Below the pieces are notes generated by a model. That model was not told the DNA's origin and searched no databases. It saw only the letters and a list, made by a program, of their open reading frames with translations. A DNA stretch of 64,000 nt. Origin: Cyanophora paradoxa CCMP329 (taxonomy: Eukaryota; Plantae; Glaucophyta). How positions within the stretch are numbered: the first letter of the stretch is position 1; each line of letters begins with the position of its first letter. Shown piece after piece: positions 11,710 to 35,565 of this stretch. The stretch spans positions 2,567 to 66,566 of the forward strand of contig QPMI01000279.1 in assembly GCA_004431415.1 (NCBI GenBank), read 5' to 3'. The position numbers were made by a program, and so were the translations under genes.

Positions 11710-12661
11710 TGTGATCTGCTCGCCTGGATCAGCGCGACATTCGCGCCGGGAACAAATCCGATGCCCGGCACGGCATGTGCGAGAAAGCACCAGTCGGCGC
11801 TGTAGCAAGCGCACCTGAAGTCTGCCCTGCGGCGTCGCAGGGCTTGGGTTGGAGGTGCTACGGTGGTGCTGTACCCAGGCGCTATTATGATCGCGCTGAT
11901 GCACCTCTGCTCCGTGCAGCGCTTGCGCCATACTAATGATGATGCTGCGCGCGAGGAACGCGTCCGGACACCACGCCGAGCCCGATGGCCTGAGATTTCG
12001 AAATTGATCCGTGCCCGACGGTCATGCCGTGCCGCAGCCTGGCAGTGCGCGCGCTACGGTTCGGATCATTAAGATTACCTCCGCGGGAAGCGTGCCACAG
12101 CGCGCGGCGCTATGGAGCGCTAGCGATCTAGATCTAGCTAGCTCTGCCCGACATTCAGACGCTGCTAGCGCTCGGCCCTCCTGGACTTCGCATGCGGATT
12201 GCCCCATTCCAGGTGCGCGGAACGGGTAAGTTTTCGGTGTCATTCACAATATATCAAGGCGACCAAGCAGCAAATACCTAGTGCACTACGGAAAAAGGAT
12301 CGAAAGACTGCTGAGAAGCACGTCCAAAACGAGCTCGCTCGATATCCAGGCGTACCACCTTGGAATCCTAACGTACGTTACTACTCTATTCCCCCTACAC
12401 CCCCACGAACTATGGAAAGAGGCATCGCGTACAAGGTGGCGAGCGGCTGGGAAGACATATCAAGAGACGGAGATAAATACTGCCCTCACTCCTGAAGCGA
12501 AATTGAAAGGGAGTCGCAACAGACTGGGTCCCAAAATCTCCGGGAAGGAGAGGAGGAAGCAAAGGAAGCGAAGAGAATCCAATCCACAAAAAAGACATGG
12601 CTGAACTACCCTATTGCAACCGGGGACCGCCTGCGGACGGAAAGACCGACGGCTACGGCGC

Positions 12662-13326
12662 TTACGCCAGCGCCGTCTTCAAGGAGTCCGACCGCTGGAG
12701 TGCCCGGCGGGGAGACGACACGCTGCTGCCGCCGAACGATGCTGACCGCTGAAGAGGAGCCCGCCCACCTGGAGACATAGACATACTGCGGAAGGAGGAG
12801 AGGAGCTTGTCGACCGGCGACGACGGGGTGGCCGCCCGCGGATCGGCCGCAAGGGCTGAGGAGCTGGCTGACCGCGGAAGGGAGCTGTCGCTGAACGCCA
12901 TCGCGCTGGCCGTCTCCGCGCGGCCAAGGACCTCCACCTTCACGGGGACTACGCCGCGCCCAAGCATCCCGATGCTGCCGGCAGCCGCCCGCGAAAGGTC
13001 GATCACACGCCCGTGGCAGTACGGTCCACGGTCGTTCACCCGCACGACCACCGACTGATCAGTGATGGTGTTTGTCACACGAACACGCGTTCCGCACGGC
13101 AACGTGAGGGGCTCCGGTCAAGGAACGTGCGCGTGATTGCGCGCCGCACAACCGCGCGGGGCGGCGCGTTTGCGGCGCAAGGCAATTTTGGCGAGCAGGG
13201 GGTGTCAAAAGGATATGTTTTGTGCGCCGCCGTGAGGCCATTCTGGTCGAACCGATCACCGCACGCCGTCCTCCTGCCTTGAAACTTGTTGCTGTAGAAA
13301 CTTGCCTGGCCCACGATAATCGACAT
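12662..13326 (-). CDS. rlpA: RlpA-like double-psi beta-barrel (DPBB) lytic transglycosylase with Ser-rich tail; 2 exons (13326-13217, 13103-12662), 183 aa
   Basis: GQASFYSNKFQGRRTACGDRFDQNGLTAAHK|TLPCGTRVRVTNTITDQSVVVRVNDRGPYCHGRVIDLSRAAAGSIGMLGRGVVPVKVEVL matches the RlpA signature (ASWY..G.TA.GE.FD...LTAAHRTLPFGT.VRVTN...V.VRVNDRGP...RIIDLS). Confidence 0.93.
13104..13216 (-). other. U12-type (minor spliceosome) AT-AC intron, 113 nt
   Basis: 5' site ATATCCTTTT. Branch site TTCCTTGAC (13125-13117) lies 13 nt from the 3' end. 3' end ...CCTCAC. Removal joins AC|G to restore AAHKTLP in frame. Confidence 0.93.
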
Positions 13327-13671
13327 CCTGAAGCTAATCCCGCGGTGCGGGCGAACAGCGGCGAGGCCGCGAGGGGAAGATGCGGAATCTGATAGCTAAG
13401 CACTGGTACCCCCGGTTCCGTCCCCCCTGGTCTATTTGCACGCTTGCAATTGATCATGCACGCCGCGCCGGCCGCACGCCGCACATGAAATTAGCGTGCG
13501 TACGCGAGCTGCTAAGCATACATGCGATGCTAGTAGTAGCCTAGTACTCGGCGAGGCTCGCACGTGCACATGAATTCGCACGAGCGTCGAGGCGTTACAT
13601 ATGAAGTAGGCCGCAGTAGGCGTATGCTACACCTCTATAGCTAGCTATCGGGACTATAGCTAGCTACCGGA

Positions 13672-15901
13672 CTAGGGCTGCCAGGGCTTGTCCTCGAAGG
13701 AGAACCTGCACGCCAGAGGGGAATGGTCGCTCCCGAACTCGCGCAGGGACCACTCCGCGCGCCCCTGCTGCCCACCCCCGCCCGAGTACTGCGGAACGTG
13801 GAACGAGACCTGCGCCCGAGCGGCGTCGGATCGGGGTCCGACAGGGGCGCGCCCCCCCGGCGGGGGCTCGGAGGAGTGGCGGTGCAGCGCAGGCCGCCGC
13901 CGCGCGAGCGCGCGTGCGCACCCCCGCCACGTCGCCCTTGAAGAGGATGAAGTCGACGCGGGACGGGCCCCCGCCCGCCGACGGGTTCGCCGGCGCGTAC
14001 CTGCCCCCCCCCGGCTCGACTGGGGCGCGAGGGGCGGGCGCCGGCTGGGGGCCCGGGCGCGCACGTGGGCTCGCGGGCCTCCGGGGCGGCGGGGTCGGGC
14101 CCGGCGGCGGCGTCGCGGAAGCCGTCCTCGAGGACCTCCCGCATCGTCTCGGAGGCGAGGTCCGCGTTGAAGTCGCCCACCCTGCCGCCCCCCGGCGCCG
14201 TCGGAAGGCAATGCGGAAGGGTTCAACTGGGGGTTCAATTCGGATGGGCACCAGAGGACGATGTCGGCGGGCTTGGCGCGGAGGAAGTGCCTGACGCGGT
14301 GGACGATGCGCTGGGCCTGCTTGAGGCCGTGCTTGCCGACGGCGAGGTGGCAGTTGACGAGGCAGACGCGGACGAAGGCGAGGCGCCCGGCCACCTTGCG
14401 CGTGCACAGGACGATGTTGCCGGCGGAGCCCTCCTCGTTCCACACCTGGTTCTCCACGTCGAAGTCCGGCTCGAAGAAGCGGCTCCGCAGCAGGACGACG
14501 CAGCCGTTGTCCACGCCGGCCGCCGTCGGGCTGTTGTACGCCAGGCTCGTCGCGAAGTAGAGCGGCCGCTCCTCCGTCCGGAAGCGCTCCAGCAGGTACT
14601 GCAGCTCGCCCCGCTCCACCTGCCCAGCCCCGTCCCCGCGCCCCTTAACGGGTCCCACCGCGGGGCGCCGGCGGGGCTCGGGCGCGCCTCCTGGAGGCAG
14701 ACGATGTCGGCGTCGTAGGCGGCGATGCGGTCCATGACGATGTGGCGCCGGCGCGCCGGGTCCAGCAGCGCCGCGTCCACGCCCTCGTACCACTCCGGCG
14801 TCACCCAGCAGTTCGCCAGCACGTTGTGCACCAGCACGCTCACGTTCCGCCCCGGCGGGTGGCCCTCGACCGCCGCCGGCACCGGCACATCCGGCTTCGC
14901 CACTGCGCGCGCGGCGCGTCAGGGCGCGGGCCGCCGCGAGGGAGGCGAGGCCGGGCGCCCGCGCCTTTCCAGGTGACCGGCTGCTCGGGGGCCGGCTCCG
15001 CGGTGGGGGCGGGCTGGGGCTCGGGCGCGGCCTGAGCGGCCCGGCCCTCCGAGGGCGGGCGCTCGGGCGGCGGGGCCTCCGCCTGCTGGGAAGGGGGGCG
15101 GGACGCGGGGCGGGCCTCCCCGGCCGTGGGCTCCGGCGTGGCGGGCTCCGGCGCCAAGATGTGCCCGGGGGTCCCCTCGGGGGTCGGAGTCCTGGCAAAG
15201 TCCGAGCCGGGCCGTGGAGGGGAGGCTTCCGGCTCCGGGCTGGCAGCATTCTGTGCGGAACCAGGGCGCTCCGCCGCCGCAGAGGCAGGACGCTCAGCCG
15301 CCGCAGAAGCAGGACGCTCAGCCGCCGCAGAGGCAGGACGCTCAGCCGCCGCCGAAGCAGGACGCTCAGCCGCTGCCGAAGCAGGACGCTCAGCCGCGGC
15401 AGAAGCAGGATGCACAGCCGCGGCAGAAGCTGGCCGCTCCGCCGCGGCAGACGCTGGCCGCTCTGCCGCCGCAGACACTGGCCGCTCCGCCGCACCAGAG
15501 GCCGGGCGCTCCGCTGCAGCAGAAGGTGGACGCTGCGCTGCTGCGGAGGCCGGGCGCTCCGCCATGGCGGAGGCCGGGCGCTCTGCTGCAGCAGAAGCTG
15601 GCCGCTCAGCTGCCGCAGAGGGCGGGCGCTCGGGTCCCGCCGACGCTGGTTCCTCGACCGGCGCCACAGGAGCCGGACCGTCTGTGGAATCTTGCTCAAC
15701 TCCTGCCTCTACAGCTACTTGGGCCTCGCCATCCCCAGCGTCCGTCTGGGCAGGCTCGCTCGCAGGTGCTGGCGCTTCAGCCACATCTTCTGCGTTCTGC
15801 GCACTGGGATCCGCATCCTGCGCTTTCTCTGCCGGACCCACCGCCTCTGCCGTTGCCTCGGCAGCGGCGGCCGGCTGCTCCGCGGCCTCCTCCGCCTCCA
15901 T
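13672..15901 (-). CDS. Endonuclease/exonuclease/phosphatase (EEP; CCR4/nocturnin/PDE12-like) with long low-complexity N-terminus
   Basis: Motifs VLVHNVLAN, DADIVCLQE|V, NGCVVL, VNCHL, GDFNA, RVDFIL, GSDHSPL. The N-terminal Ala/Glu/Pro region carries an octapeptide repeat. Confidence 0.85.
15258..15640 (-). repeat. Coding 24-nt tandem repeat, ~16 x (AAAERPAS)
   Basis: Visible in ORF 14840..15901. Third positions have diverged while the amino-acid repeat is kept. Confidence 0.92.

Positions 15902-27798: not shown

Positions 27799-35565
<7,767 letters not shown>

Follow-up and report, generated by a model that had tools for sequence, protein, structure and literature searches.

A U12-type AT-AC intron in a prokaryote-derived RlpA-like gene of Cyanophora paradoxa coincides with splice signals that the RlpA coding motif can spell

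The glaucophyte Cyanophora paradoxa has been reported to carry 77 minor introns, and of the minor snRNAs only U11 was detected in it (PMC10639083). A survey of 3000 genomes yielded very little evidence that new minor introns are created de novo (PMC10639083), and a chance origin of their strict motifs is considered improbable (10.1101/2020.10.12.336362). Minor-intron gains later than LECA have been proposed on several occasions (PMC6865273, PMC2831892, 10.1101/2020.10.12.336362); among them, the 55 human candidates are age estimates that come with no mechanism (PMC6865273). For U2 introns, a duplication model is established, in which an exon segment containing AGGT gives rise to the new intron (Rogers 1989; ATP2A1, Hellsten 2011; PMC4974935).

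The intron described here lies in a window of 64,000 nucleotides of C. paradoxa CCMP329 contig QPMI01000279.1, to which all coordinates refer; it interrupts an RlpA-like gene on the minus strand, as do all features of this gene given below. The sequence and RNA-like contigs together define a U12-type AT-AC intron of 113 nt (13216-13104) in phase 2; the gene has no other intron. Its 10-nt 5' splice site (13207-13216) agrees with the U12 donor consensus [AG]TATCCTT (9/9); read in frame, it would encode T-Y-P-F as the continuation of the protein, a variant that occurs naturally in RlpA. The 9-nt branch-site consensus (13125-13117) is followed by exactly 13 nt up to the intron end, within the 10-20 nt before the acceptor that characterize U12 introns, for which no pyrimidine tract is needed. 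The acceptor is AC (13104-13105), and as exon 1 also ends in AC, the intron is flanked by a direct repeat of 2 nt. Exon 1 comprises 110 coding nucleotides, so that a Thr codon is split, and excision yields the sequence A-A-H-K-T-L-P-C-G; without splicing, the RlpA frame is shifted and meets a stop after 83 amino acids. The initial annotation had claimed a 113-nt AT-AC segment with U12 donor and branch consensus, the removal of which exactly restores the AAHK-TLP motif, and its coordinates, spacing, termini and restored motif were all recovered. Within the window, the U12 donor occurs once, in this intron, against 0.12 occurrences expected, and the complete layout of donor, branch site and AC was present in none of 150 simulated windows. 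An Rfam search of the window found nothing and hence no snRNA gene.

The joint 13103/13217 is present in contigs of RNA-like runs from three studies (X15, X17 and X19), and it is absent from a DNA run (X5), in which the sequence is continuous through the intron. Because exon 1 and the intron end in the same dinucleotide, the position of the joint is ambiguous by 2 nt, and only one of the three registers, AT-AC, has canonical ends. Six RNA-like runs contain 79-84% of the words of the region, approximately as expected with the intron removed. None of the contigs spans the intron interior, which gives no sign of retention, though contigs lose rare forms and are no measure of it. The regulatory control by the minor spliceosome that the initial annotation had inferred finds no support. 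Splicing at alternative GT-AG sites was considered and rejected. Among the GT-AG pairs near the site, none rejoins the frame while retaining both halves of the domain, one pair of 41 nt falls entirely within the 113-nt intron, and the contigs use the AT-AC joint, at the 13217/13103 junction that the initial annotation had put forward for checking. The intron is therefore confirmed as genuine, and it is excised exactly at AT-AC in RNA-like contigs. It is scarcely credible that the major spliceosome or some altered machinery processes it, or that the joint is an artefact. The detection of U11 alone in C. paradoxa would fit such a reading, as would the fact that the runs are assembled contigs whose RNA status is a guess. 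Against this stand the perfect donor and branch consensus in their proper spacing and the identity of the joint in three studies. Moreover, six GT-AG introns of neighbouring genes (64-112 nt) are likewise missing from these contigs, none of which covers the intergenic stretch 11968-12209, so that they behave as RNA.

As had been claimed, the host is a bacterial-type RlpA gene: both exons match consecutive parts of the family profile TIGR00413. Coding exon 1 (13217-13326; 36 codons plus 2 nt) encodes the first half of the RlpA double-psi beta-barrel and matches profile positions 1-31 (E 6e-10), and the second half, encoded by the first part of exon 2 (12917-13103), matches positions 33-112 (E 3e-23). 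The matches are colinear and the split codon corresponds to position 32; therefore, nothing has been gained or lost in the RlpA domain. Exon 2 alone reaches 82.9 bits with a cut-off of 82.15, and with exon 1 the match also covers positions 1-31. Among solved structures, that of the stand-alone protein PA4485 is nearest (E 5e-30). The exons were searched separately, with glaucophyte orthologues standing in for the joined protein, and the tree row based on exon 2 only is unreliable.

The best match of exon 2 among 5.8 billion proteins comes from the glaucophyte Cyanoptyche gloeocystis (73%), and a second glaucophyte orthologue belongs to Glaucocystis incrassata, from which it follows that the gene arrived before the diversification of the glaucophytes. 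In the same protein set there is no near-identical full-length protein (80-285 amino acids), and exact pieces are absent as well. Public gene models probably miss or mis-build the gene, in line with the earlier expectation that gene finders restricted to GT-AG would miss or split it. Among the approximately 470 homologues listed, glaucophytes are the only labelled eukaryotes, the other labelled matches being bacterial. Trees on 92 columns do not single out a bacterial donor, and the AU test does not reject a placement in one clade with cyanobacteria (p 0.44). A grouping of the glaucophytes with bacteria that have the same pair of cysteines is lost once the Cys columns are masked; this kinship was rejected and the resemblance is treated as convergence.

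Since the host gene belongs to a prokaryotic family, its ancestral state was intronless and the intron was gained after transfer. Very probably, the nucleus of a glaucophyte ancestor received a stand-alone RlpA gene from a prokaryote, and this gene later acquired the AT-AC intron that is now removed exactly, and there is good reason to place the gain after LECA. Of the earlier proposal that the intron was gained after transfer, the gain subsequent to the departure of the gene from its prokaryotic source is upheld, but 'after transfer' does not equal recent: the gene is common to three glaucophyte genera and the gain may be very old. It could also be imagined that the gene entered before LECA, for example with the mitochondrial ancestor, that its intron shares the age of other minor introns, and that glaucophytes alone kept the gene. 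Most minor introns are indeed ancient, and the tree, which cannot name the donor, is accompanied by alphaproteobacteria among the top matches. This history is nevertheless very improbable in view of the restriction of labelled eukaryotes to glaucophytes among the approximately 470 listed homologues, the 60-75% identity to bacterial domains, the cyanobacterial clade that is not rejected, and a metagenome scan in which none of 86 matches is an intron-bearing eukaryotic copy.

The intron sits where the RlpA coding motif has latent U12 signals, an observation that is new here and goes beyond the initial annotation. In a survey of 408 non-redundant homologous domains and 280 junction positions (278 for AC plus donor), only nine of the 280 positions allow the donor to be spelled in even one of the domains, and the intron junction ranks first with 38% of the total. 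AC plus donor can be spelled at a single position of the 278, which is the intron junction. The branch core can be spelled mainly (64% of the domain total) at [A/S]-L-T codons that end 15 nt upstream of the junction, compared with 13 nt in the actual intron. In the Cyanophora gene this site is occupied by Gly-Leu-Thr codons (13232-13239), which would represent a decayed copy of the parental branch core. Reading of exon 1 into the intron gives T-Y-P-F-D-T, for which the RlpA counterpart is T-L-P-F-G-T; Tyr follows the junction in 14 of the 408 domains, and Leu in all three glaucophyte proteins.

Real DNA gives a similar picture. In a set of 57 non-redundant bacterial genes assembled without regard to the pattern, the junction is second of 246 positions by combined score (z 3.5), preceded only by the adjacent base. 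In the metagenome scan, about 30 RlpA genes without interruption, all of 26-46% GC, have the donor at the same base, and in 17 of them it is preceded by AC; a perfect branch core at -15 is found in 4 of 80 genome loci. One uninterrupted metagenomic gene, L067, has the full set of U12 signals minus one base, and another, L057, a T-Y-P-C variant with the Cys pair, has nearly the whole set; no natural gene was seen in which all signals are perfect together. The chance of hitting the top-ranked site is about 0.4-3%, or roughly 1%, a post hoc figure, the pattern having been noticed before the test. That the intron is located at the sole spot where the coding sequence can spell all signals points to short DNA duplications as a way in which minor introns can be created from scratch.

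The motif [A/S]-L-T-A-A-H-K-T-Y-P-[F/C] is able to encode a U12 branch core and, 15 nt further on, an AC acceptor followed by a perfect AT donor. Duplication of at least about 30 nt of this motif, either in plain tandem or as an insertion flanked by a long duplication, would place the donor of the first copy before the branch site and acceptor of the second. The minor spliceosome could then excise the intervening DNA, and the original protein would be back at once. Subsequently, the spare signals in the exons would decay, by replacement of Tyr by the family-usual Leu in exon 2 and by synonymous drift in exon 1, and the interior of the intron would diverge. We infer a duplication, an ancestral Tyr allele and later decay; as Leu is found in all three glaucophyte proteins, the duplication model dates the gain before the split of the three genera. 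Such a duplication, the U12 counterpart of the Rogers/Hellsten model, appears on balance to be the best mechanism, and chances seem about even that it made a canonical AT-AC intron in one step, by a transposon-free and sequence-encoded route. Against it, no residual repeat is left, and the required ancestral Tyr allele is rare and occurs in none of the three glaucophyte proteins. No similarity between intron and exons was detected beyond the fixed motifs (p 0.09-0.75, with shuffles that keep the U12 motifs). A candidate residual duplicate, consisting of a Leu-Pro-Cys reading and an in-register Cys-Gly within the intron, vanishes in comparison with the motif-keeping shuffles and was rejected.

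The unrelated interior of the intron and the 2-nt AC repeat at its borders would equally suit the insertion of a ready-made U12 intron, by intron transposition, or of a Physarum-like DNA element with U12-like ends, the match with the coding motif being coincidental. Transposon-driven creation of U12 introns has been proposed for Physarum. However, the sequence ends of the intron do not form terminal inverted repeats, and the insertion would have had to land by chance on the top-ranked site, so this explanation is considered unlikely. Still less likely is the gain of a U2 intron that was later converted to the U12 type by mutation or by activation of cryptic sites. Its neighbours are rich in GT-AG introns of similar length (64-112 nt), and U2-to-U12 conversion has been reported for Drosophila dURP and inferred for some human introns, but many exact changes would have been needed, at both termini among others, conversion is held to proceed mainly from U12 to U2, and the position would be left unexplained.

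Upstream of exon 1, the 5' UTR extends at least over 13327-13416 in contiguous RNA contigs. It has no ATG and contains an in-frame stop (13398-13396), so that there is no N-terminal extension. A hidden transit-peptide exon, joined through the AG at 13328-13327, was rejected on the basis of this stop and of RNA contigs that are unspliced there, although contigs can lose rare forms. Downstream of the barrel, exon 2 continues into a low-complexity tail of 84 amino acids (12662-12916) with 27% Ser and four R-x-x-S motifs, followed by the stop and a 3' UTR (12225-12661) covered by RNA contigs.

In two runs, gap-free RNA contigs (13284-13807, minus strand) lead from an upstream gene of the exonuclease/endonuclease/phosphatase family (PF03372, stop near 13672) into the RlpA 5' UTR. 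The 3' end of this gene probably overlaps the RlpA start, and owing to the overlap gene finders could fuse both genes. Further upstream, a low-complexity frame with many Ala/Glu/Arg/Pro/Ser repeats and no Pfam match (14840-15901, minus strand) forms the start of the upstream gene. On the other side lies a major-facilitator transporter gene (PF07690; 9239-11931, minus strand), from which several GT-AG introns are spliced. The RlpA gene has on both flanks short stretches (12100-12200 and 13520-13680) that are richer in AT and contain repeats of palindromic words similar to TAGCTA; they are possibly promoter or 3'-end elements. Elsewhere in the window, the GC content drops to about 50% at 30000-34000, compared with 60-80% in the remainder.

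In all three glaucophyte proteins the barrel starts directly, with the domain beginning at residue 5-9, and a Ser/Arg-rich tail forms the end. They have in common two cysteines, the first of which is encoded by exon 1, that are rare in bacteria. The pair covaries: among the 408 domains both are present in 8, the first only in 4, the second only in none, and neither in 396. It probably forms a disulfide. Exon 2 retains both Asp residues (codons 13033-13031 and 13000-12998), including the Asp of R-V-I-D-L-S. Judging from its spacing, we take the Asp encoded by 13000-12998 to be the counterpart of D168 of P. aeruginosa RlpA. The latter residue is catalytic (PMC9712689).

The initial annotation had proposed a peptidoglycan-remodelling function, which finds no support: a signal peptide, lipobox, transit peptide or SPOR domain could be recognized in none of the three glaucophyte copies, the C-terminal tail being of low complexity. 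By contrast, of 398 homologues that have a leader, 362 show a hydrophobic stretch. Most likely, the product resides in the cytosol or is imported by a non-canonical route, and is a barrel that would bind or cleave glycans and could be phosphorylated in its tail. The Cys pair would suit an oxidising compartment, and the tail would suit cytosolic kinases. A function at the plastid peptidoglycan is a tentative and rather doubtful option; it would need non-canonical import, since there is no targeting signal and the 5' UTR, which is not spliced, contains an in-frame stop. A single-sequence structure model of the Cyanoptyche protein (pLDDT 36) was set aside, and no literature was found that links RlpA to Cyanophora biology. 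The RlpA-like protein (12662-13326; P0001, P0288), with its covarying Cys pair and phospho-motif tail and without targeting signal, occurs throughout the glaucophytes, an algal group whose plastid retains a peptidoglycan wall, and it appears to be undescribed and unannotated.

The interest of this locus is that in a gene derived from a prokaryote the ancestral state must have been intronless, which makes for a clean case of gain. Furthermore, the position of the intron supplies a concrete mechanism, which is amenable to tests at the bench and across other prokaryote-derived genes with U12 introns; L057 and L067 are natural templates with a near-complete set of U12 signals in coding sequence. 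In the literature covered, with key subscription papers outside the search, no report was found in which a gene of prokaryotic origin carries a U12 intron or in which such an intron is traced to a duplication.

In its textbook donor, branch site, spacing and termini and in its non-zero phase, the intron conforms to the U12-type AT-AC class, and minor introns are known from its lineage. Unlike typical U12 introns, it resides in a prokaryote-derived host, so that its position could not be inherited from a eukaryotic gene family, and it is probably absent from public gene models. The gene product shares the double-psi barrel, the conserved His and both Asp residues with the RlpA family (TIGR00413, PF03330; PA4485, PDB 4AVR; septal RlpA, PMC9712689). 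It differs from septal RlpA in being nuclear-encoded, in the lack of a signal peptide, lipobox and SPOR domain, in a Cys pair that is rare in bacteria and in its Ser/Arg-rich tail. The intron shares its probable post-LECA appearance with dURP/Zrsr2, Physarum and the human candidates. However, Drosophila dURP/Zrsr2 represents a conversion inside a U2 intron (PMC2831892), while the RlpA intron was gained from a necessarily intronless state, and the Physarum introns are ascribed to a transposon-linked burst with altered motifs (10.1101/2020.10.12.336362), while the motifs of the RlpA intron are canonical and the Physarum-type terminal inverted repeats with TA target duplication are not seen. The closest parallel is with the gains described by Rogers and Hellsten, in which a branch site, acceptor and donor are likewise latent in coding sequence and the protein is unchanged. 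In RlpA these latent signals exist at the level of the family and not in the present glaucophyte exon 2, and they are of the U12 AT-AC type. The intron does not resemble its flanking exons, a likeness that is expected to be lost if the gain is old, and with no residual duplicate the evidence for this kinship with the Rogers/Hellsten gains is positional.
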